NCBI GenBank assembly: GCA_904063045.1
Contig: CAJFCJ010000006.1
Span: 5,465,100 to 5,529,099 of the forward strand
DNA length: 64,000 nucleotides
Direction of reading: 5' to 3'
Source: Dimorphilus gyrociliatus
Taxonomy: Eukaryota; Animalia; Annelida
Shown: positions 1 to 16,530 of the stretch, in pieces
Layout of the letters: the number at the start of each line of letters is the position of its first letter
Position numbering within the stretch: position 1 is the stretch's first letter
The notes under the pieces: model-generated
The model's input: only the letters and a program-made list of their open reading frames with translations
The model's database searches: none
What the model was told of the DNA's origin: nothing
Program-made: the position numbers and the translations under genes

Positions 1-1475
1 GCAAATATATATATTATGTACAAATGTTAACATAGATAACATTAAATGCTATAATCAATGTCAATTTTTCGATTAAATCAATGCGTGTTAAATCATTTTT
101 ACAACTCTGTTTTTTTGCTTTAAGGTCGAAGTTACAGATGTTTGTTTGTGTTTTAGACGTGTTGTCAGCAGTTGTTTTCCAATGAAGAAGTTCTCTTTGA
201 AATTTGTTTATAGTCTTCATCTATTCTCACTATCAAAATGTAAATAGAGAAACGCGGCAGCAGCGGCAACACGAATAATTAATGCTACCCGACTAGCACT
301 ACTATTTCTCTCTATCTTTTCTCACTTTCCTCTTTCTGTATGTGTCCCTGTCTCTCTTTACCACTTATTCAGTCTATTATTTTGTATTTTTCTCTCCTTC
401 GTTTTATCTCTCTCTCTCTCTCTCTCGAGCACTTAAGCTTTATACAGTATATCAAGATAGATACTGTATAATGAGGGGAGACAGAGAGGTTTCTATCTCC
501 ATTGTATTTTTTGTGAGAACGGTGATGAGCTAGTCACTCATTAATTCCCTTCCGGTAGCGTGATGACTTACGAGTCGTTTTTTTTTCTGTTATTGATCGA
601 CTAATGTAATATCCGACCTTTTGACTTTATATCTCACTTGTAAAGAGAAATATGAGCAGACGAGCCTACTAGGCGTTACTTTTTTTTATCTTGTTGAGTT
701 GGTGAAGAATCTCTGGAGAGTGGTGACGCCCAATAAAAAATCGACCTTAATTAAACTAATCGACGAAGCAGTCTGCTGCTGGATTGACTTGTCACATCCA
801 GTCGAGTCTGACGACGTACAATTGCCTATTGGATTACGTCGTTAGTGTACGTCGCAAAGAGAGGTGGGTGGGAGTGAGGGCGGCAATACTAGGTGTAAAA
901 TTTTAGGCTGTTTTTGGTGATTGACGAGGATCTGTAATTTCATTAACGAAATAAGGCGTGAGTTTAGATTATTGACAAGGGACAGGGAAAGATTTAATTT
1001 AGTTTCTGGATAATACTATAGTAGCAGGAGGCTATTTATTGGGTTATTAATTTATTAAAGCGGGAGGAAGGGATGAAAGAAATGCGAATCTCTCCTCGCT
1101 CTGTATGCATGGTACAATCGATAGGATAAGTTTGTAAGAAAGCGAGTAACACATTTCGGTGAGGAGGGAATTCTATTGATGGGAGGGCGTCATTGCGAGT
1201 TGTGCGTTATCGATCTGGGAATGGCGTAATTTTTTCTTTCTTCCAAATACATTTTCGTTTACTACAATTACAAATTTTTTTGACTGAGGGATTTAGTTTG
1301 CATGCAAACTTGAGAATCTATCTGCTTTCGTCAGATAAAACCTATATAATGGGAAATATTCTACTGTACCACGGCAACGAATAGCTATATTTCAAATTAT
1401 CTAGGCATTTTTTACTTTTTATTAACGACGGCATAAAAAAAAAGAATGTTTATGTTATTTTTATTTTTCCTTCAG

Positions 1476-4400
1476 GCCAAGGCTTATGGTGCAACATTGT
1501 ACACCGAAGTCGTAAAAAAATTAAAGCTAATTGAGGCGGACTATTTCGATTTGGAATTTACGGAAACCAGCGGTTGCAACGTTTGTAAATCCTTTTACAT
1601 TTTAATCCATAACCAATGATGGGATTATACCTTATACAGTGTTGGCTCGATAGAGAAAAACCAGTATTGAAACAGTTGAACCCAGCCGATTATACTTTGA
1701 GATTTGTTGTTAAGTTTTACACGCCTGATCCTGGTTTGTTAGAAGACGAATATACTAGGTAAGTTAGCTTTTTTTCTTGTAAATAACCGTAATAGAATAT
1801 GCGGAAGATCACTTTTTTTTTGTACTAGAATTCGTTCAGACCGTTTTTATATAGATTGTCAATGCTCTGAAGTAGTTTTACAAGTGTTATTATCGGATTC
1901 TCTATTCGTCTCTTGTTCTCGTAATATTTTGTTTAAGGAAAGAAAAAGTTTGAGTGAAAATAATTTAAACTAGAGAACACATTTCTGGGGTAATAGATAT
2001 TTCTTTGGCGCCAAATCTTATTTATTATGGTATATGATAATAAATATAGCGTATCTAGGGGTTGGAGTATTCTCCAATTTTTTTGCCCTATACGAATTCG
2101 GAAGATTACTGACCATGTCTTAAGAAAGAGCACAGAATGCAAATATTAACTGGGATCTGCTAACCGGAAACTTGCTTCTTGCTTTATCTCTTTAAAATAT
2201 CTCATCTATCCTGCGCAAAATGTCTGACCTCTTCTGTTAAGATTTTAACATTTTACGATTGAAAGGAAGTCAAGATACATTTAATCGTAATGAATTTATA
2301 TTGATACCATAAATGTTCGCAAGTATCTACGAAATGAAAATACTCTCACCTAGGGAATCAATAATATAATCTACACTGTATTTAGTAGACGAATTATTTC
2401 AGTCTAATTCAAGGAAATCGAATAATTTGGAGCTCATTAAATATGAATAAGTTTAAGAGTACAAAAGAGCGGAATAAAATCCTAATAAAAGAATTAGCAT
2501 TTCGGGAAAAATTAATTTTTTCTAAACAGGAATTTATTGTAATAGATTTTTTACTATTAAGATTAGATATATGAATTATTATAGAATGGCCTGATTTCGG
2601 GACCGTAGGAAATGGTTTGACCGAATTCCAAAAGTCTTATTTTGATAGATTCGTAAAGATTAATAATCGCTTCTTTACATTTTTCTATTGAATAAATGCT
2701 GCAATAATTAATTTCGAAGATAAATACTATATAATAAAGGAATAGCTTGGTGGAAAATAACCTCTCTTGTCAAAACGCTTCGGTTATTTTTTTTAATCCT
2801 CATAATCACTAGAGAATCTAGTACAATTGAGTTTTTTCGAGCGTTACACTTCCTGGCCGACTTCCTTCCAGCTTGATTGGCTAGACTGAGTTATATCTGT
2901 ACCACCATCTAGGATAAGAGGAGATTTTTAGTGTAACAGTCAGTCACGATTGCTTAATATTATTCCAAAACATTTGAAGTCAAGTCGAATCGGTCGAGTG
3001 GAAAAATCAGTCACCGCTTTATCTCAATTTCCTATCCCTCTTGACACAAGTCAAAGACAAATTTAGATTCTCAGGACGTGAAGAAAAAGTATGGTATTAA
3101 AAAAAAAAAAGAATAAGTGCCGAGAAATTTAAGCCGAGTCAGACGGATAATATATGTGTGCTTCGTTGATTACTAGTGAAGAAAGTTAGATAGTGCGCAC
3201 CGATAAAAGCTGGTAGAAGAACGAATATCGTCAATGAGATGGAAAAGACATTCATGAACTCGGAAAGCAACATTTTATAGGCAACGTTCCTTCTTTTACG
3301 AGAACGTGTCTTCAGCAGCACAAGTAAATTGGATAGTGGCGGTCTTTTTAATGGCACCTCCTATACGGATATAAAAGGAGATTTTGTTCCAATTTAGAAA
3401 ATCTGAGAATGTTGCCATTTTTTTCGATGATACCTGTGTCTACTGTAGAATGAAACCAGGAATAACTTTAATAAAAATTCGCCAATTTATCTATAAAACC
3501 CTTTAGGGCAAATAACCCATGATTATCACTTTTCCTTGCCAGTCTCGTCTTCTGTCCTATTATTTCTCCATGTCTTGGGCAAATCTTGCGGTTTGTTAGT
3601 CGTCTCAAATTCCTACAGATCTCATTTATGTTGAAATAAGGACTGATCGATAGATTGCAGTAGCATTAGATTGGAGATAGATAATAGATATAGAAAAGAG
3701 TTGTGTATTTCCTGCCTACAATTTACATAGTTTAAATATTTTAATATTGAAAAAATATTTTCATATGCACTCCTTATCGGGAACTACTATTAGCACAAGT
3801 TAAACAAACCTAGTTTTTTAGAGGAAATTTAGAAATTAAAACTCCTTGAGATCAAGTCACAATAGAAGATAAAATAGATATAGGTATCTACTTTATAAAG
3901 CACTTTGTACTAAGATTTAGTCAATAAAAATTACTTTACCTTGATAAATTTTTTGAACATTTGATTCTTACTCAATAATTATAAATCGAAAATTACTTTT
4001 TATTACTACTTCCTGATGATTTCTCAAGTTCTGCATAAATATTAAAAATTGATTTTTATATGAATCATTTAAGACTTGAATAAGCTTTAACTAAAAATCG
4101 ATCAACCATTCAGACACTTTTTTATGTTGACTTGCACTTCAAGTACAATTTCTGCGACTAACTGATTAATAATATTTATTATTCAAGGACATTTTAAAAA
4201 AAAACTAGCCAATCGTAGGGACTATTTTGGCTCGGTTGCGTGCAGGCTGAATTTACTCATATTAAACGATTATTATAGTTTTATTGCTGACGACATTTCA
4301 TGGTGAACGGTATAAGACTTATTATATGAGCAGTTAAGAAAGATAACAGCCATTCAGCTGGGGAGAAAGAATATATTCAATTTTTTCAAAAGAAAATATT

Positions 4401-7400
4401 ATATTGAGAGAGATTCTATTTTATATTCGGTGAAAAGGATTCTCAGATGGCGTGCATTTCGAGTATTAGAGAGCAGAAATCAACAAAAATCAATAACAAT
4501 TTGCCGCCTGAATCAACTAATCGATCACAAAATAAATTATCAGTTACTGAAAGGTTAAAGAAACTCGTAATATTTAAATCGAGAAAACGTGGTCAGGAGA
4601 AAGGACGTCGTTTAGCCTCAATTCAGGAATTGGGTGAAAAAGTAGATATTAATATCTTTTTTGGGAGATTAGAAGAAAAGGGAGTGTTGGCAAAGTAGGT
4701 GGCAATATGTAATATTTTCTTGTCACACATTTTATGTGTGCACAACGAAATATTTTTCTCTTTTATATACAAGTGTATAAACCATATATATATATATTAT
4801 ATACGTATTCACGTATGTATTATAGATTGAGGCATGAGGGAACAATAATTATGTATGGAGTAAGGAGCAATCAATTGCAAATAATTTTAACCAGAAGTGT
4901 CGAGTCCTCTGTGCGCAATACACTTTTGGAGTCTAGCGGGTATTCTCAGGCGTGTTTGGATTACTTTATACGCTATGACTTTGTAAAATCTTTTAAATTC
5001 GAACAAGACTCTGGTTTCCTTTGTTCCAATGGTCATGGACTTGCGACAATTGGTTTTGTAATATATGATGGGAAACGCCACTACGGAGTCACAGTTAATC
5101 ATGGTGCTCATATAAATCCGTCCCAAGCATTTTACGATCAAACTAGCAAATTTTGCAATAAACAGATTGGAGGTCACTTTTTCTCAGCTTTTAGGGTTTC
5201 ACCTTTAGCTAATAATAATAATAATTATAATAATAATATATCGCTGCTCAATGATATTGAATCAGATCACCGTTCTAGAAATATATCTTCCGCATCAATC
5301 AGGACAAAGTCTTTACCATTAGTTAGTTTTACAACAGCTCCCGGTTACGTGCCTGTTCCAATGATTGAACAAGAAGTTTTCAGATCAATTAGTCAAGAGC
5401 ATAGCATGGATTTTACAGTAATAGAACTAACAGAGTCATTAGTCGATTATAAGGAATCAACAATTCACTTTGAACCTATATCAGAAGGAACAAGTCTTTG
5501 GATTGATACATGGAACGGTCCTCACGAGTGTGTTGTTCATAGTGTGTCAGTGGCTGTTCAAATTGATAATAATAGTTGCTTTACTGACATGGTATTACTA
5601 AGGAATAATAATTCAGTGCAAAGAGGGGATTCGGGTTGTGTTTATATTCGCCAGAATCGTTTGTATTTAATACACCTGGGCAGAATAACCTACGAATTGG
5701 AAGAGAGATCGAAAAAATTTAGCTTTAATGTAGCTGTTCCTTTGAAGAACGAATGGGACTTGATGAAAAAAGCAATTATTTGTAGGAAAATTAAACTGGG
5801 GTTAGACTAAACAAAAAAAAAAACGAATTCATTCACTATAGAAAATGAAGACTCTCTAAGTACATTATAGGTCCTGCTGCTGCGTTTAGTTATTTTTTTA
5901 TTTTTTATCAAAACACAACCAACTTTTTTTAATTTCTTACAAGTTTACATTTGTTTTTTTATTTTATTTTATATCCGTATATCTTACGTCATTCTAGTGC
6001 TTACCTCTCGTTACTAGTCGAATGACTGATAGTATTACACCGATAGCAGACTTACTTAGAAGAAGTTATCTGATCTTTCAATGGGCTTTATAATTTTTTT
6101 CTGGCTGCTTTATAGTATTTAATCTTTTCTTTGTATTTAGTAAATAAAATTTGTGATAAGATATTATTTTGTATTGATAAATGTACGTTGTAAAGGGGAG
6201 GAAATAAGAAAAAATTGTATGACTAAGAGAAATGTTGGCTATATAGAAGAGTTATCCATGAGGCAATATTTCACACTCTTTAGGTTCGTTTTGAGGCTTG
6301 GCTAAGTGGGGTTAAAAGTTCTCTTGTAAGTCGGCACGTAAAAGGTGGTGGGGTACGAATTGATTTCAGAGCTAACGAATATTTCATTTATAGACCTTAA
6401 TAAGACGTATAGTGTAAACAAGTAAGAATATTGGAATTTATTCTTACTGAACTTGGAACTTTGTTCGAATTCTAATTAGTATCATTTGTTTGTTGAAGTG
6501 GAAATAAAATTCGAATCTTAATGAGTAAACAACTGCAAATGATTTTTCTTAATTTACAAGGTATCTATTCGCGCTGCAAATACGAAGAGATCTACTTACT
6601 GGCGTCATACCGTGCCAAGACCATACTGCCGTTCTCCTTGCTTCCTACATTGCACAAGGTTAGTGAAATTTAAAAACTTTAAATGCGTGCGGATGATCAA
6701 AAGAAGGAAAATGTTATTGACTAATGATAATATCATTCCAGCTGAATTGGGAGATTTCATTGAGGATGAATATGTCGATCATACGTACTTGAAAACGTTA
6801 AGGCTCCTTCCAAATCAAACGGATGATTTAGAAATTAAAATAATGGAACATCATAGAGAACATATGTTAGTAGTGTTTTTTATTTAAAAGCTTCTTGTTT
6901 AGTTAAGTGATTTCTATAAAAACTGATTGTTTACTTAAATAGAGGACAAACCCCACCTGATGCAGAATTCAATCTACTCGATACCGCCCGGAAAGTAGAG
7001 CTGTACGGAATTAAAATGCACCCCGCAAAGGTACTGGTAAGGCACACTTTATCGTGCATGCTGCAATTAATTTATCTATTGTTATTTTTCTTTCAATTGT
7101 CATACTTCTGTTGGCTTCTTTATTTTTCTCATAAAAACGAAATTTCCTTCAGAACATTTAGTACTACATTATCTCTATTTTCAGGACCACGAAGGAGTGT
7201 CACTTAACTTAGCCGTCGCTCATATGGGCGTTTTAGTCTTTCAAGGATATACGAAAATCAATACATTTTCATGGGCTAAAATCAGGAAATTGTCGTTCAA
7301 GCGCAAGAAGTTCTTAACTAAACTTCATCCCGAAGGCTACGTAAGTTCCTATTAGTGTCAAATTCTATTGTGGTTACTCTTTCTTCAATTTAACAAGGTT

Positions 7401-10400
7401 TTTCTCTCTCTTACACATGCGTACACTCTCTTTCTCTCACATCCCTATCTCTATCTGTCTATCTCATTTATGCGTTTATCTGTCAATCTATCTATCTATC
7501 TATCTTTTTCCTATTCTTAAAGCATGCATTACTTATTATTATTTGGTAAAGAAGAGAGTTTTTTATTTTAGAGTTTTTATCATTGAATATTTATCTAAAA
7601 AAAAATTGTCAATTTCCTGTTTATTATTCATATTCTCTATTTAAATATGACTTTCTTTACGTGACGATAGGCCGAGGTAACAAGGATGAGCATAAATGTT
7701 CTTATTATTTTATTCTTATTGGTGTTATATTTTTACCCATTAGAAAGAGCTTATTAAGCATGAAAATAAATTTGCTTATTATCTTATACCCCGAAGACAC
7801 CTACAAATAATAATAGTTGCTATTATTAAGTTATACAGTATAGTCTTTTTTAGTAAGATTTAGCGTACACTCTTATTTAATTTGTCGTAGTTGTGTCAGT
7901 ATTTCCCTACGAATTCATTATGGAAAAGATTGAAAAGAGAAATGCTTTTTTTGTTCGTTAAATAGGGTTATTATAAGGATACAGTCGAATTTTACTTTGA
8001 CACAAGAAACGAATGTAAAAACTTCTGGAAGAAATGTATTGAACATCACGCCTTTTTCCGTTGTCATTCTGTAAAAAGATTAGCTAGAAATAAGACAAGA
8101 GTCGTCAGCAAAGGATCATCATTCAGGTAATGTTAACAGCAAAAATAATATATTAAGAATTATAAATAATAATAAAATATATTTTTAATAGATACTGCGG
8201 AAGGACTCAAAAACAATTGACAGAATTTGTCAGGGATCATTTTGTTAAGAGGTCAACATTTGAAAGGTGAATAAAATTTTTTTTCCATATAGATGTTAAG
8301 TAACTTAAATAGCGTTCTAGTTAAATATTATAAAAAGAAATAAATCGAAAAGCAACTGTATTTTGGTCGTTTATTGTAATTTAGTAAAAAAAAACAGAGT
8401 AAAAGCATCTAAATTTACGATATCAATATTTTTTGCATGCTATCTTTTGTCGAATGCACAGAAAGTAAGCATTATGTTGTAGTTGACTGAGTAATTGTTC
8501 ACTTAAATGCTTTTATATGTACAGTATAGACATACAACTAATAGTATATATCTGATTATCTGATTCTCTTTTTCGTGCACTCTTGGTTTTCTGATTCGAT
8601 ACTATTTAATTTGCTAGTAGATGAGATGGCTTCCTAATCTTAGCTTAGTAGTTGTAAATTGTATCGGATTGTAGCTTTCAGAAAACAGTATTCATTCTTA
8701 GTTGATCAATTAATTATGAAGATTACAGGGCTGTTTGTTTGTTAAAACTGTTTTATTCATCGAGTGTTTTTACTTATTTAGATCAGCATCGCAGAGAACT
8801 ATGGCTTCCGTTGGCAAAACGCCAACACCAAATACGGGAACATTGAACTCGAAGCATGAATTCCTTATGCATAATACGTCAAGTGGTTCACATACTCTTG
8901 AACGGGCACACACGATCGAAGATGACGGTTCTCCCAAACGATCTGACCGAGCTAGAAGCACGGAAAGACCGAATGAAAAAAAGAAGTCAGCTTTGGAGCA
9001 GCTAGAGAGGACAACAAAAGGTGCTTCGGACGATTTCAATTATGAGTATTATCGGTTAAGTTATGACGATAAAATAGCTAATAGTAATCGCGTTAACGGT
9101 GTGCGTAAAATTTGTGCCGGTACAAATGACAATGATGACGGCGTTTCGCGTGGTTCGTATCATTTGAGTGTTGAGTGTTCGTTGGATAAGAGGGACTCTT
9201 CCTTAGACGCACTTGACGATCATGCGCGATCCGAAAGTGACGTTGAGGAGTTGACTGTCGAAAAATCCGATTCCAATGAAAACGTAAAAAAGGTACAAGT
9301 TGTCTTAGAAGCTGATAGCTTCGATAGGGGTGGTGAAGATGAAGAAGAGCTAGGGAAAAATAAGGAAGCCGAAAACAATGATGAAAAAGAACTACCAGAG
9401 GAATCGAAGGAGGGAGCTGAAATGAAGGAAAATATCACAGAAGAAAGTGTTTCACAAGAAGAACAAGCAGAAAACATTGATGCTACTCAGGAAGGGGCAG
9501 ATGATGAAGAAGAAGCCCTCAACGAGATTAATGCGAATAAGATTAAAGATCTGCTTAGCGAAACTCTCATAGACAGTGAGCACGAGGAAGATGAGATTAA
9601 AAATGAGACTGATGTTCTTAACGGAAACACCAATCTTGATAAGAACATTGCTGAAGAGCATTTAAATGAAGATATTCCATACTTTTTGTATAAGCGTAGC
9701 GCAGATAGATCTAGATCAGTCTCTCGTGAAGCCTCTACAGAACGACCTCGAATGTCACGGGAAGACAAGCGGTTGGAAATGGAGCAGATAAAAACATCTC
9801 TTAAGTCGAACAGAACCCGCAGGGATCAATCGCCCAGTTTAGTGATAGATTATAAGTCTTTACCCTCGAAGGACTCTTTTTCGTTTGTTGACGATACCGT
9901 CAGTCCTACAGAAGAAAAAAATCTAATCGATTTGATGAGAATTAGAGATAGCGGAAGACATGTAACTCTACCACTTGCTCCTGTAGTCGTCGCAACTCAG
10001 ACCCTTCCGGTGGCCGAAAGCCTAGATATGGCTAATTATGATCCGCCAGCTCCTTTATTACCCTCTGTTCCTATTGTTGAAGAGAGTTCGGAGGAGCAGT
10101 CTTTAAGTGATACGCATTCGTCAGCTCCAACTGTTCGCGAGATAGAAGAAGATGAGAAGTCAGATAAAAGCGAGTTTATGCGATGCGATACGGTTGCAGA
10201 GACTGTTGCAAAATTTTTAGCTGATGAGCGAAATTTAGCTCCACCGTATCCGCCTCCACCAATTCCGTGTTTAGAAGAAAAGGAGAAAGAGGAATCGGAA
10301 CCGGAAGAGATTGCAACAGCTGCTGATTTGCTCAGTCCCTCTTCTTCCAAATTAAATACTATACCTGCTATTGATGACGATGAAGAAGAACAAAGGTTTT

Positions 10401-13400
10401 CCGATTGTGATGTTATGACTGAAACAGTTTCATCATTTTTGGCTAAGCCATTAGATTTAGAGCTTCCACCTCCTCCACCTCCTCCACTCCTTTGTGACAT
10501 AGATCTAGATGATGATTCTTTTAATTCATCGCCTAAACGAAAGAAATTAGTAAAATTTGCCGGTTCTAGCACAGATTCAAGTAGAACGGACCTGAGCGAG
10601 AGGCAGAGGAAAGGAATGAGTTCTGCTTCATCTGATACTTCAGAAAAAGAAGCAGAATCAAGCACAAGCGTATCATCCCCTTCTGATGCTTACGAAAAGG
10701 GTATACTTTTATCATCTGGAGCACCTAAAGCGTCGATGGAAGACTTGTCAGGCACAACAGATTCCGAAGACGGAATAGCAGCAAAGAATGATTTAGAAGA
10801 TAATAATAGACAAGTGACTGATGTAAAATTGTCTTTGGGATTTTCAGAGTCAGAATTAGAGACGCTTGTAGAGGATTCATCGTATAGAGAACATCAATCA
10901 AATGCTGGGCATCCATACATGGAGAGATCTTCTTCAGATGAAGAGGAAGATACGTTGGGACCTTTACAAAGTGATGGTATAGAGAAAAAATTCGAGGACC
11001 TACTTGAGGCTCAACTAGCTGAGGATAGTTCAGAGAGTGATGAAAACCCAATAGCTGATATAGAGGAAGCGGCGGATATTTTAGATGCTGACGTCTTCAG
11101 AAATCCTTACAATGTTAAAGGAGATCAATACGATTTTGAAATGTCCCCAATTAAGACACAGGGTTCGATAAAATCTGATGCAGAATTATTTGACAGTAGT
11201 TCTAGCGATGGGGAGGAGGTAGGTAGAATGGAAAATGAGGAGAATAGAGATTTACTGGAAGCTCTTGAAAAGCTTGATCTACCTGAAACTGTGCATGAAG
11301 ATGATGATAGGGGCATGGGAGAGGAATTTAAGGCGGAAGTAGTCGACTCTTCGTCAGCGGAGAGCGACTTTGTGGACGTAGCACAGATATTAAGAGAAAA
11401 GAATAAGTCTAGATCGTCCGCTGAAAGCGATCAACATGCAGAATCTAATACAGAAAATTAGTGAGGCTTTTTCCCTCTCATACTTCAGACTAAAAAAAAG
11501 GCTTATTGTTTTTTATGATCGTCTGTAAATAGGTATTTTTTTTTTGCCTTGGGTAAGGTGCACTGCCAAAACAAAAAAAAAGACGGGAGGATCAAGGGGA
11601 TTTACACTAGAGTTAATTTTCTCAATTTTTATCTGCTCATTGTTTCCTGAAGAATTTATTTCGCTGTAATAGTATTTTATTTTGTTAAAAAGTATTAAAA
11701 CTATAAAATCCTTTTCATATTTAGGTAAAAAAAATTGCACGCCTTGTTCTTGCTTTTGTTGCTTTTTGTTGCTTCACATAGTCGCTTCAAATTAGATAGA
11801 TATACTTAATGATATTACTTCTCAAACAAAGGCTGATAATATTAGTTGAAATATTATTCTATTGCTAATTAGAAAAGCAAGAATAACAGAAAATAAGCCG
11901 CTAGTCATTGTCATTTGACGGATATTCATTTTCTGTTTCTGTTTGTCAACAGATGAATATTCTTAGTTTTAACAAAAACAAAAACATAAAAAGAAAAATG
12001 TCTCTTCTTTGATGTCACAAATTCTGCTTGCTCTTTATTTTGGTCTTGTGAACAGCCTTTGTTTTTTTTTTCTCTCTCTCTCTCTCTTATTTATATATAA
12101 GGCGGATGAAGATTGATTTTTTCTCTCTCTCCTTTTGTTAAGGGAAAAAACAAACAAAAATTTATAAAAGAGTATTGCTCTGAGCCCTTTTGGCTATAAT
12201 TTTCATCCGCTTTGTTTGTTCAGATTGTAGTTGTTTTTTACTTAGAATAGTGGCTCTCACTAACAAGAATCTCTGACGCATATGCTCATAATCTGCTGCA
12301 GTATAATATTATAAATCGATCGTCTTTTTCGTGCAGAGACTTCTCATTCCAGCTATTTTTTTTAAAATATCGTCAAATTAATTATTAAGCAACTGTCTCA
12401 TGTACATTATGTCTTTTTTGTTTATTATTTGGAATAAAGCTTATATCTCTCCATCTTTATGATATATGTAATATGTATATATATCTATACGAAATATATA
12501 TGCATATGTATGCCCTATGTGTATTTATATACACTAAAAATCTATCCTGTAAATATAAGAAGTTTTGTGTATATATATAAAAGAATATATGTATGCATAT
12601 ATATTTTTATATTGAATGTATGTATGTATTTTATCAACGAATTGCGCGAAGAGGTCATCATTGTCATTTTTATCATCTCTGTCCATTCATCCTATATATA
12701 TATATATATATATATGTAAATAATAGGAGGTTATATTAGGTTACAGTTAGATTAGAAAGCTTGTTGAATAATTTACACTTTAGTCAATTTATAATCTAAA
12801 TAGCTGTTAGGTTTATTAAAATCTTTATAGGTAATTATTTATATAAAGCGAAAACGATATGAAAAAAAAAAGAAACTTTTTTTTCGTCTTGTGAATAGAG
12901 AATGATGAGAAATTTATCGAATTTGTAGTCTATTCATCTATCAAAAGGTGATTAGATTTGTTTCACAGATATTTATCGCTTTTCCTATTTAAGTAACTGT
13001 TATAAAACTAGAGTCAAATTCTCTCGAAGCCTTATAAAGGATCTGTAATTAGAGCTGTATATTAGCCGTTTTATGTAGGATACGAATATATTATAGGCTT
13101 CTAATTAAGCGACAAGTTTTAAGGGTCTCTCTTTCCTTCCAAAAAAATAAAAATATAGTTTAATTTACCTTTAAATGAAAATTTTCCAGCAAGTCTGTCG
13201 AATAATAATCACGCCCTTGCACAAGATGGCGTTCCACCTCAGCACCACCTACTCAATCCTCAGCAGTTTATGCTAGGAGACCGAAAATTTTCCGAGCCGG
13301 TAATGTTGGGAAGTGAGGAGGATGAGAGGAGAGAGTTAGCCCGGAGTCCTGAGATTGAAGATATTCCCGAAAAGATTGAACATATTAACTCTTTACCATC

Positions 13401-16400
13401 GAAAAACTTTTATATACAGTAAGTTCTTTTTATACTATATTTACTTTTTCTGGACAGAAAAGTTTTGTCAGAGCCGTCCCACTTCTCTGACTTCTAATCG
13501 ACCGCATTATTTACCATACTGTCAGTTATAGCTGGGCCGTCTCGTAAATAAATAAACGATTAAACGAAAAACTTTTACCGCTTTCAGAATGCTCGAATTT
13601 TCTTTTCCATCTTTTATATAGTTTTTGAACGCCTTAAGGCATCATTTTTTGTTCGTCAACATGGATTAGACGGTCAGTGATTGGACGAGCATAATCTCTT
13701 TTCCTATCTTTTTTTGCATAGTATTTTTTTTTATTGGGCGACGGGATGAGCATTAATCTCCTTTAGGGCAACCCTCTGGAGAGTTTTTCTGCCATATTTT
13801 CTGCGCATCCCTTCTAGCTAACACATTTCCAAAAAACCAATCCCATTTGCTTTTCCTTCACAGATCGAGCCCCAGTTTGAAGAGAGTACAGAGTGACGTA
13901 GGACGTCCATTATTCACGAGTACACCTTATTCTGGAAACGCATCTGCTACCCATTCGGTAACGAGCGATTCTAAGCCACCGCCACCTCCCCCACCGTACG
14001 AAGAAGTTGAAAAAGATCCGTACTTGAAACGATTAGCTCGAGAAGAAACAATAACAACCAGATCAACAACGTCAGCCGCTTCAATAACTATTACAAGCGA
14101 CGCTAGTGTTACCTCATCAAGGGGAATGACGGACGAGTCAGAGGAAGAGAGTCGGCGTAGACGCCTTCCCATCGATCGTTCCTACTTTATAGCAAAAGAA
14201 TTACTTATGACAGAGCGTACTTATAAAAAAGATTTAGAAGTATTGACTGTGGTTTGTATATCTTGGAATAATTCTCCGTAAAGTGCGTACTTTATCTTCT
14301 AATCATTTTACATAGTTCCTACGAAACTCACTTAGTCGAGACGATGAAGACTTATTACCCCCATCTTTAGCCGATACACTGTTTTGCCGTATAGACCAGA
14401 TATATGAATTTCATTGCGCTCTCCTTATTGAAATAGAACAAAGGGTAGCCCAATGGGAAGGAAAAAATGGACAACCTTCAGATCCGATTTTTCATAGGAT
14501 TGGTGACATAATATTAAAAAATTGTACCTTCCTGCAATACTATACAGACTACTTGGAGCATCATGATGATATTTTAACTGAATTGGAATTAGCTTGCCGT
14601 AGGAATAAGAAATTCGAAGTCGCTATTCGCGAATTTGAAATGGAAAAAGTTTGCTATTTACCTTTGCATGCATTTTTGCTCAAACCGGTTCAAAGACTGC
14701 AACATTATTTAATTGTATTTAAAGGTAGATTTTATTGTTTTTTCTAATTACTTCAAAGGCGATTGAGATACATTAACAGATTCGTTTTTATTAATTTAAA
14801 CAGAACTTGTTGATCATTACGACGACGAGCATATAGATAAAAAGGACTGCCAGATGTGTTTGTCAAAGATATCAAGTATTTTCCAACCGTATCAGGATCA
14901 GTTACGACATTTGGAGAATGTACAGAAATTAATTGAACTACAAAGAGAGATGACTGGCATTGATGGATTGGCTACGGCCAGCAGGGTAAGTATCTTTGAT
15001 TAAGACGGTTTTAATAAACTCTTTCTTATTTAAAATTGCTCTTCTGTCTCGTCTTCTTTTGATATTCTATTTGGTTCTTCTCTCTTTTAGTTGATATTCT
15101 TGGTTTTCTCTGCACTTATCTTTTTTTGCTTTTTTTAAAATATCTTATTGGTTTGTTAACGAGACACTCTTTTCAGCAATTTGTCAGAGAAGGTTGTCTG
15201 CAAAAATTATCTAGAAAAGGCTATCAACAACGAATGTTCTTCTTGGTGAGTCTACTTATTGCCGATCTTAATTAACTAGGAGAATTTCTTTTAATGTATT
15301 CGTTCTAAATTTGTTGACAGTTTTCCGATATGCTAGTCTACGCTAGTAGAACGTCTACTCCCGTTCTACAATTTAAAGTTCACGGCCAATTACCCTTAAA
15401 AGGAATGAAAATAGAGGAAGCAGAAGAGCGAATGGGTATATCTAACAGTTTTACTATATACGGTGGAAGCAGAAGTTTATTAGTTGCGGCGGGGTGAGTG
15501 CTGCTTAATTATTTATTAGTTTTATTTTATTTGCTCATTACTCCTTTTTCTTTAACACATCATAGGTCGAAAGAAGAAAAGGACAAATGGTCCGAAGATC
15601 TGAAAAAATCGATAAACCAATCACAGCAACGCGAAGATGATAATTCAATAAGATATCCTAGTTTAAAAAGTAATAGTTCTTCGGATAACTTAGAGGAGAA
15701 CCAAGATCACTTACCATTTCCCCTTCAAGATAAACAAGGTCAACACAGAGCTAATACTACGGTAAGTTTTCCATTAATTTTAGCTCTTATTCATTTCTTT
15801 ATTTCTCTCTTCTATGTATTCCATGACAGATGCACGTTTGCTGGCACAGAAACTCTTCAGTTAGCATGACTGATTTACATATTGCTTATGCGGTAAGTTT
15901 ACATACTTGGATAACATCACAAGCACTAAATATCCGGTCTTTTCATATAATTTCCAGAATCAATTAAGTGGCTACCTGCTGAGAAAATTTAAAAATTCCA
16001 ACGGCTGGCAAAAACTTTGGGTTGTTTTCACTAATTTTTGCCTATTTTTCTATAAAAGCTTTCAGGTAAGGAGAGAAAAAAAAGTCAATTTATTTATCCA
16101 TTGTAAAACAATATTAATCAACTTTACTACTTAATTATACGGTTGTTTTTTTTTCTCTTTCCCCTTTTCTATTAGGACGACTACCCTTTGGCAAGTTTAC
16201 CTCTTATTGGGTATACGATTTGTGAACCGTCCGAGACAGATAATATTCAAAAAGATTATGTGTTTAAGCTGCAATTTAAAAATCACGTATATTTCTTCAG
16301 AGCTGAATCTCAATATACGTTTCATAGGTATGATATACAAAAGAAAAAATTTGTTTATTTTCTCTTCATTACCCCAACTAATTGCTTTTTTTTTTCCTTC

Positions 16401-16530
16401 TTCTTCTTCTTTTTCTACTTCTTTATTCTTCATTTTCTCACCTGAATCGTTGCTTTTCTTCAGATGGATGCAAGTAATTTTCAATTCAACTAGAAATACA
16501 AGTAGAAAGCGAATAGATGATGGTCACTAA
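1476..16530 (+). CDS. FARP: FERM, ARHGEF (DH) and pleckstrin domain protein (FARP1/FARP2 family), 5'-partial, multi-exon
   Basis: Hand-spliced GT-AG exons with consistent phases: 1476-1580, 1640-1758, 6561-6658, 6742-6865, 6943-7030, 7185-7340, 7966-8126, 8192-8266, [alternative 8782-11461 and about 13159/13190-13418], 13864-14251, 14316-14724, 14804-14985, 15177-15245, 15321-15493, 15566-15761, 15830-15892, 15958-16065, 16176-16327, 16464-16530 (TAA). FERM motifs [66 protein letters not shown]; FA motif [16 protein letters not shown]; DH motifs [17 protein letters not shown] and [15 protein letters not shown]; PH1 [23 protein letters not shown]; PH2 [33 protein letters not shown]. Start codon not found in the window. 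Confidence 0.95.
4447..5810 (+). CDS. Nested two-exon gene (about 410 aa): intracellular chymotrypsin-fold (clan PA) serine protease, Ssy5/NAL1/bacterial S1-like
   Basis: Exon 1 4447-4694 (ATG; donor GTAGGT, phase 2) joins exon 2 4826-5810 (acceptor TATAG, phase 2) in frame (VLAK/LRHEG). Motifs: ATIG...YGVTVNHG (His codon 5100-5102), SMDFTVIEL (Asp 5409-5411), RGDSG (Ser 5631-5633), LYLIHLG, VAVPLK. Lies in FARP intron 1759-6560. Family assignment is by motif pattern only. Confidence 0.75.
8782..11461 (+). CDS. FARP: 2.7-kb acidic, low-complexity alternative exon of FARP (about 890 aa), probably terminal in a FERM-only isoform
   Basis: Acceptor TTTAG at 8781 is phase-2 compatible with the FA exon ending at 8266 ([14 protein letters not shown]). 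Open frame runs to TAG 11459-11461. E/D/S-rich with polyproline runs. Confidence 0.75.

Follow-up and report, generated by a model that had tools for sequence, protein, structure and literature searches.

A conserved gene nested in a FARP-type intron of Dimorphilus gyrociliatus encodes a probable, very divergent intracellular chymotrypsin-fold protease

Does the long intron of a FARP-type gene in the annelid Dimorphilus gyrociliatus harbor a second gene, and is the product of that gene an intracellular protease? We analyzed a stretch of 64,000 nucleotides from this genome (assembly GCA_904063045.1, contig CAJFCJ010000006.1, positions 5,465,100 to 5,529,099 of the forward strand), hereafter the window, in which positions are counted from the first letter. 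A sequence-only reading of the window had joined two open reading frames (ORFs) within 4447-5810 into a serine protease of the type of Ssy5 and NAL1, hidden in the host intron, and had suggested that this gene was possibly acquired horizontally or derived from a virus or a mobile element. Plant NAL1 and fungal Ssy5/SltB are intracellular proteases of chymotrypsin fold that turn regulators of transcription on or off. We find that the gene is genuine and conserved. Judging from its sequence, it probably encodes a new, very divergent intracellular protease of chymotrypsin fold, and membership in the NAL1/Ssy5 family is not demonstrated.

Results

The nested gene is expressed and spliced as predicted

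The two ORFs lie at 4447-4698 and 4734-5810 on the forward strand, at the coordinates given by the sequence-only reading. Exon 1 ends at the donor AAA/GTAGGT (4694/4695, with the GT at 4695-4696), and exon 2 begins behind the acceptor TATAG/A (4825/4826, with the AG at 4824-4825). The phases match, as base 4826 completes the codon split by the intron, and the spliced frame of 248 + 982 nt comprises 410 codons, in agreement with the predicted length of about 410 residues.

Aligning contigs of public sequencing runs to positions 4300-6000 of the window, we checked the joint. The type of these runs (RNA or DNA) is not on record. The joint 4694/4826, which skips 131 nt bounded by GT and AG, is present exactly in contigs of three runs. 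One of them, the X6 contig of 1,652 nt, covers 4300-4694 and 4826-5796 and shows no difference to the window over these 1,366 nt; it extends a further 286 nt upstream of 4300, to about 4014 if collinear. The other two joint-bearing contigs come from relatives that are about 8% diverged. A contig that lacks the intron and is otherwise identical to the locus is most simply explained as RNA. Thus, the gene is expressed, with a transcript over exon 2 and with the splice junction that the sequence-only reading had put forward for checking.

The host gene carries FERM_N, FERM_C, RhoGEF and PH domains in this order, all on the forward strand, which indicates a FARP architecture. The FERM_N exons, ending at 1759, and the following FERM exons, from about 6520 on, enclose an intron of about 4.8 kb. 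The nested gene lies wholly inside this intron, on the same strand as proposed, and is conserved there. The genome of D. gyrociliatus has a median intron length of 66 bp and shows neither operons nor trans-splicing (PMC7854359). Given this median, the nested gene would explain the unusual length of the host intron, and the absence of both operons and trans-splicing implies that it should have its own promoter. A block at 4060-4180, located 270-390 nt upstream of the start codon, is 90-92% identical to the counterpart locus of a relative (contig L001, described below), while its flanks are 47-74% identical; possibly, this block marks the core promoter or the beginning of the 5′ untranslated region (UTR). 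Two short upstream ORFs, of 9 and 3 codons, begin at 4300 and 4326, respectively.

The above arrangement raises a question of whether the gene is independent at all, or whether the ORF merely rides on alternative or unprocessed FARP transcripts. The shared strand is in line with such an origin. So is a second contig of 727 nt, from the same run as the X6 contig and at a similar depth, that covers 5813-6000 and extends 539 nt past 6000. This extension implies that the AATAAA at 6143 may not be the sole 3′ end, and the transcript may read through toward the FARP exon that follows at about 6520, or be spliced to it. On the other hand, the internal intron is precisely removed and the 5′ leader is collinear with the genome in all three joint-bearing contigs, that is, in three taxa. 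A collinear leader means that the transcript is not joined to the upstream FERM exons via the AG that immediately precedes the ATG. A stop codon at 4405, upstream of and in frame with the ATG at 4447, bars fusion to the FERM exons except through that very acceptor, which the contigs do not use. Together with the strong coding constraint described next, these features make an origin from FARP transcripts the least probable of the explanations that we considered.

The gene is conserved in a relative and under purifying selection

A word search of 5.8 billion proteins, performed with the single exon-2 sequence and with a two-sequence profile, matched only one protein, P0001. An exact-sequence look-up of the products of the window ORFs returned no record. 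P0001 is encoded on L001, a 23-kb Logan contig that is about 77% identical to the window over the first 12.5 kb. The first exon of L001 also has 82 codons and begins with MACIS as exon 1 of the window does, and both splice sites are conserved. The ortholog sits in a same-strand intron of a FARP-type gene, at the position seen in the window. The gene is therefore present in the FARP intron of a related species, as the sequence-only reading had asked of its proposal.

At the nucleotide level, the exons are 78-79% identical between the window and L001, no higher than the flanks. The pattern of change is that of coding sequence. Each exon has one 3-nt indel, whereas the intron and the flanks carry many indels whose lengths are not multiples of three; the intron itself is 70% identical. 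Estimating the ratio of nonsynonymous to synonymous change (dN/dS) by the Nei-Gojobori method, we obtained 0.16 for exon 2 (dS 0.95) and 0.29 for exon 1. In a closer relative, 17 of the 28 substitutions listed are synonymous, and of the 11 listed for exon 2, 9 affect the third position of a codon. The gene is thus real, protein-coding, under purifying selection and syntenic in a relative.

The 3′ end of the gene is conserved to a different degree. The segment 5733-6040, which comprises the last 75 nt of the coding sequence and the first ~230 nt of the 3′ UTR, is 85-98% identical to L001; for the remaining coding sequence, identity is about 78% and dS is near 0.95. The last 27 residues do not differ between the two, and in a table of 15 of their codons a single change, a synonymous one, was found. 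Scanning this region against Rfam gave no family, and its RNA folding is not unusual (z 0.27). The conservation may reflect a linear regulatory element of the 3′ UTR.

Exon 2 carries the motifs of a chymotrypsin-fold protease

We ran the sequence and profile searches exon by exon, with the exon-2 protein as the main query; residue numbers below refer to this protein. Exon 2 is laid out as a helical N-terminal segment followed by a putative chymotrypsin-fold domain. It contains the motifs TIG...YGVTVNHG, MDFTVIEL and RGDSGC, in the order His, Asp and Ser, and the codons at 5100, 5409 and 5631 encode these residues as the sequence-only reading had stated. Both the order and the local context are typical, with a 16-residue stretch and RGDSGC locating the candidate residues 92, 195 and 269, and they agree with the proposed arrangement of a chymotrypsin-fold protease outside the S1 type. 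A strand-turn-strand runs into T-V-N-H, and D-F-T-V-I-E-L resembles an Asp strand. F-T-D lies upstream of R-G-D-S-G, and behind Ser269 come a hairpin, an A-V-P strand and a helix at the C-terminus. The surroundings of Asp195 follow the pattern D-hydrophobic-x-V-I-x-L, and its distance to the Ser is 74 residues, compared with 75 in DegP. His92, Asp195 and Ser269 are invariant in P0001, and the motifs fall in the best-conserved blocks of both orthologs.

Performing an ESM feature search with both orthologs, we found neighbors at a cosine of 0.96-0.97, with 176-196 of 256 features shared. All the named top clusters, as judged by their Pfam-annotated members, belong to the PA clan (Nal1_C, Peptidase_S64, Trypsin and Trypsin_2). 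The neighbors include two mollusc clusters, one of which is 16% Nal1_C. According to the calibration supplied with the search tool, a cosine of 0.95 is attained by about 1 in 100 shuffled proteins.

Profile-profile comparison was made with HtrA proteases (DegP/DegQ/DegS, and an 80-sequence profile) as the sole PA-clan family. Using hhalign, the whole protein matched DegP/DegQ/DegS with P = 0.02, placing GDSG on GNSGG, and the extended alignment placed His92 on the catalytic His of these proteases with high posterior. The His-bearing part alone gave P = 0.0016, or P = 0.01 against the 80-sequence profile, and none of the 120 column shuffles attained its score. In a block test, the best His, Ser and C-terminal blocks all fell at the expected places (p = 0.086, 0.47 and 0.0065, respectively); the C-terminal block, with p = 0.0065 against shuffles, consists of the AVP strand and the helix. 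Taking the motifs, the feature search and the profile matches together, we consider it likely that the protein has a chymotrypsin-type fold.

Family searches give no protease, and the structure models are of low confidence

Other results speak against a protease or give it no support. Pfam, NCBIfam, PHROGs and PADLOC, searched at E up to 10 with the exon-2 protein, the ortholog and fragments, returned no protease family, and a PDB sequence search (queried by the sequence alone, by the profile and by two fragments) gave no protease match. An exhaustive HMMER search of 1.84 billion representatives returned a single match, P0002, which is discussed below. The hhalign evidence also has its weak sides. 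With a deeper HtrA profile of 80 loci, the P value of the whole protein rises to 0.12. Controls in which the halves were mismatched on purpose attain P of about 0.04, which is the background, and the C-terminal match at 0.042 is hence not discriminating. The catalytic Asp fares worst, since the Asp block test misses Asp195, the full-length alignment pairs the HtrA Asp strand elsewhere with low confidence, and Asp195 falls on the HtrA Asp only in an extended alignment of low confidence. The two ESM queries are orthologous and count as one source of evidence. Finally, AlphaFold2 with a two-sequence alignment yielded a predicted local distance difference test (pLDDT) score of 28.0 for the whole exon-2 protein and 28.6 for the trimmed domain; scores this low mean that the models provide no structural evidence. 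Even so, the poor models drew PA-clan proteases as their top rows, a point in favor of the fold although none of the rows is significant: Foldseek against the PDB listed norovirus 3C-like and coronavirus main proteases at the top (E 0.4-1), and an atlas shape search put a Trypsin_2 cluster first with a template-modeling score of 0.29.

These results would be expected if the gene encoded a real, conserved and lineage-restricted protein of another fold, with coincidental motifs and trypsin-like neighbors. All searches at the level of hidden Markov models and the two very large protein searches are blank of proteases, the hhalign significance is marginal and weakens with the deeper template profile, and no confident model was obtained. 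Against another fold, ESM similarities of 0.96-0.97 are rare in shuffles and every named neighbor is of the PA clan. The best local profile matches fall, collinearly, on the catalytic His and Ser. A chymotrypsin fold also agrees with the contexts of the motifs, with the spacing from Asp to Ser and with the strand and helix at the C-terminus. We regard another fold as unlikely, though it is the most serious of the rivals.

A further question is whether a protein of this fold would still be active. A pseudo-protease or a binding scaffold might account for the extreme divergence, the large insertion in the first barrel and the uncertain catalytic Asp. Proteases that have become inactive usually lack one or more of His, Asp and GDSG. 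In the present case, the His, the candidate Asp and GDSG are intact in the most conserved blocks of both orthologs, and an inactive protease appears improbable. That the protein is an active protease seems rather probable to us, at a somewhat lower confidence than its fold.

The match to P0002 (E = 5.7e-8) covers residues 12-61 of the exon-2 protein (window 4860-5009), and we rejected it as a relative because it is inflated by repeats. P0002 has 562 residues made of 64-residue HEAT-type repeats, and its score sums five weak repeat matches, of which a single one scores only about 34 bits. P0002 also matches L27_N, NleF and other unrelated Pfam models. At most, the match hints that residues 12-61 form a helical hairpin.

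The product is a basic, by default intracellular protein

Hydropathy analysis of exon 1 showed no hydrophobic N-terminus or signal peptide, and over both exons the maximum in a 19-residue window was 1.06, with no transmembrane stretch. Lacking both a hydrophobic leader and a transmembrane window, the protein would by default be intracellular. The marks of secreted S1 trypsins are absent as well: neither the translation nor Pfam shows an IVGG site, TAAHC, GDSGGP or PF00089. This bears out the description in the sequence-only reading, which had noted the missing signal peptide, activation site and trypsin patterns.

With a pI of 10.3, the product of exon 1 is very basic, and it contains a cluster of 12 residues that we speculate to resemble a nuclear localization signal. 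Exon 1 was compared with Pfam only and gave a sub-threshold match to Cue1_U7BR (E = 0.007). Within exon 2, the Asn-rich stretch has the lowest identity to P0001 and contains the sole indel of this exon. The intron between the two exons holds a (TA)n palindrome.

The gene shows no sign of recent acquisition

The suggestion of a horizontal, viral or mobile-element origin found no support. Under this rival reading, the gene would have come recently from a bacterium, a virus or a mobile element and then been domesticated within the host intron. Viruses and bacteria commonly have small GDSG proteases, the gene is an orphan at the sequence level, and viral 3C-like proteases are the top, non-significant Foldseek rows, as one might expect of an acquired gene. 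However, its GC content and GC content at third codon positions (0.29-0.30) resemble those of the host exons, it has a spliceosomal intron of its own, and it is not flanked by terminal repeats. A relative has kept the gene in this position, with dS of about 0.95. Searching phages and plasmids by tblastn, and viral, bacterial/archaeal and metagenome collections for relatives, we found none, while mollusc clusters are among the nearest ESM features. A recent horizontal or viral acquisition is not supported, and we rate it as very improbable.

Features of the locus and its host gene

The features of the nested gene and of the host are collected in Table 1. A block at 6520-6640, just upstream of the exon for the FERM middle lobe, is 85-97% identical to L001 and is probably a short extra FARP exon that starts this lobe. 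With this exon, the host intron would end near 6520 and not at 6690. Between the FERM and RhoGEF parts, an open FARP-type exon of 913 codons without any Pfam domain spans 8720-11458; its counterpart in L001 is an ORF of 864 codons at 13778-16372. Upstream of the FARP-type gene, L001 carries at 531-3177 a LisH/WD40 gene on the forward strand and an RNase P Rpp14 gene on the reverse strand, and the region matching this segment falls outside the window. We found no paralog of the nested gene within the window.

Table 1. Positions of the nested gene, its candidate catalytic residues and the host exons and domains in the window
Feature	Position	Strand	Basis
FERM_N (PF09379)	1437-1616	+	Pfam, E = 6.4e-5
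Upstream host exons	1437-1759	+	FERM_N
5′ leader	4300-4446	+	X6 contig covers 4300-4694 with 0 differences; collinear with genome
Exon 1, coding	4447-4694	+	82 codons + 2 bases; ortholog 70% identical, dN/dS 0.29
Intron, GT-AG, 131 nt, AT-rich	4695-4825	+	joint seen in three runs
Exon 2, coding	4826-5810	+	327 codons + stop; ortholog P0001 75% identical, dN/dS 0.16
Putative catalytic His, exon-2 residue 92	5100-5102	+	in an 18-residue motif
Asn-rich, poorly conserved insertion, exon-2 residues ~125-165	5199-5321	+	between His and Asp strands
Putative catalytic Asp, exon-2 residue 195	5409-5411	+	in SMDFTVIEL; inferred
Putative nucleophile Ser, exon-2 residue 269	5631-5633	+	in QRGDSGC; invariant in P0001
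3′ UTR, transcribed	5811-6040	+	contig coverage; conserved versus L001
Downstream host exons, FERM middle and C-terminal lobes	6520-8127	+	Pfam; L001 comparison
FERM_C	7071-7352 and 7966-8127	+	Pfam, E = 2.8e-15
RhoGEF	14316-14744	+	Pfam, E = 7.1e-22
PH	16176-16442	+	Pfam, E = 0.0022

Discussion

The best explanation of our results, which we hold to be fairly likely, is an independent, expressed, two-exon nested gene for a cytosolic or nuclear protein of 410 residues with a divergent PA-clan serine endopeptidase domain at its C-terminal end. The ~140 N-terminal residues would comprise the very basic exon-1 part and the helical segment, and the ~270 C-terminal residues would form a highly divergent chymotrypsin-fold domain in the style of Trypsin_2, Nal1 and Ssy5. 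In this domain, His92, Asp195 and Ser269 would build the triad in the cleft between the two six-stranded beta-barrels typical of the PA clan, the Asp being the least certain of the three, and the Asn-rich stretch of 40 residues would be a surface loop inserted in the first barrel. Catalytic activity and a role as an intracellular signaling protease are what we infer from this layout. We speculate that the basic N-terminal ~140 residues target or regulate the enzyme. Regulation by a pro-domain, as the sequence-only reading had proposed, is likewise a speculation, and so is the idea, by analogy with NAL1 and Ssy5, that the enzyme cleaves a regulatory protein.

How close is this protein to known proteases? 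NAL1, the product of rice NARROW LEAF 1, has the triad H234/D291/S385, forms a hexameric cage and carries an ATP-binding domain (PMC12012508). The nested-gene protein resembles NAL1 in its His/Asp/Ser order, its GDSG-type nucleophile, the lack of a signal peptide and the N-terminal extension before the protease domain, and Nal1_C (PF25819) clusters, mollusc ones included, are among its nearest ESM neighbors. Unlike NAL1, it has no Pfam match to Nal1_C (in the whole protein, the fragments or the ortholog) or to NAL1_N (PF25608, in exon 1 and the N-terminal part of exon 2), even at E = 10, no PDB match to NAL1 chains, and no sign that it contains an ATP-binding domain or forms a hexameric cage. 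The spacings also differ, with 103 residues from His to Asp, compared with 57, and 74 from Asp to Ser, compared with 94. Ssy5 and Aspergillus SltB are cytosolic signaling endoproteases with a chymotrypsin-like domain behind an N-terminal regulatory domain (PMC3145550, PMC4985261), and Ssy5 is regulated by its prodomain (PMC3145550). S64 (PF08192) clusters are among the ESM neighbors of our protein, but Pfam gives no match to Peptidase_S64 PF08192, and its N-terminal part, where peptidases of the S64 family have an inhibitory prodomain that is removed after autoprocessing, has only ~140 residues. The claim of a NAL1/Ssy5-type protease is thus supported indirectly, by the ESM neighbors and the weak HtrA profile match, and Pfam shows no membership in Nal1_C or Peptidase_S64.

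The HtrA proteases DegP, DegQ and DegS (Trypsin_2, PF13365) share with our protein the strand-turn-strand leading to TxNH (P = 0.0016-0.01), the GDSG aligned on GNSGG, the FTD ahead of the Ser loop, and the AVP strand with the C-terminal helix. Unlike them, it lacks a PDZ domain and a signal peptide and contains an Asn-rich insertion of 40 residues, and the similarity lies below every HMMER threshold. The differences to secreted S1 trypsins (PF00089) are those given above, namely the missing signal peptide, IVGG, TAAHC, GDSGGP and Pfam match. Animals already have non-secreted chymotrypsin-fold proteases, such as HTRA2, TYSND1 and FAM111A/B. As intracellular PA-clan proteases exist in animals, the kind of protein is not new; those enzymes are recognized by Pfam as Trypsin_2, whereas the nested-gene protein is not and has no detectable sequence relation to them.

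In the library of papers that we searched, none described an animal counterpart of NAL1 or Ssy5/SltB. Since the mollusc clusters found by the ESM search are recognized as Nal1_C in part only, we tentatively raise a further possibility, which we would not call likely. The gene could be the annelid member of an unstudied lophotrochozoan clade of NAL1/Ssy5-like signaling proteases that has diverged past the reach of hidden Markov models and cleaves, for example, a latent transcription factor.

If the fold prediction fails, the locus would still hold a lineage-restricted gene of unknown function. In either case, every standard family model can miss a conserved and well-expressed gene, and such a gene can lie hidden within an intron even of a compact genome. 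Should this gene and the similar mollusc clusters be such signaling enzymes, they would represent an unstudied class of animal signaling proteases. And if the lophotrochozoan clade is real, regulated intracellular proteolysis by proteases of the NAL1/Ssy5 type would be an animal mechanism too.

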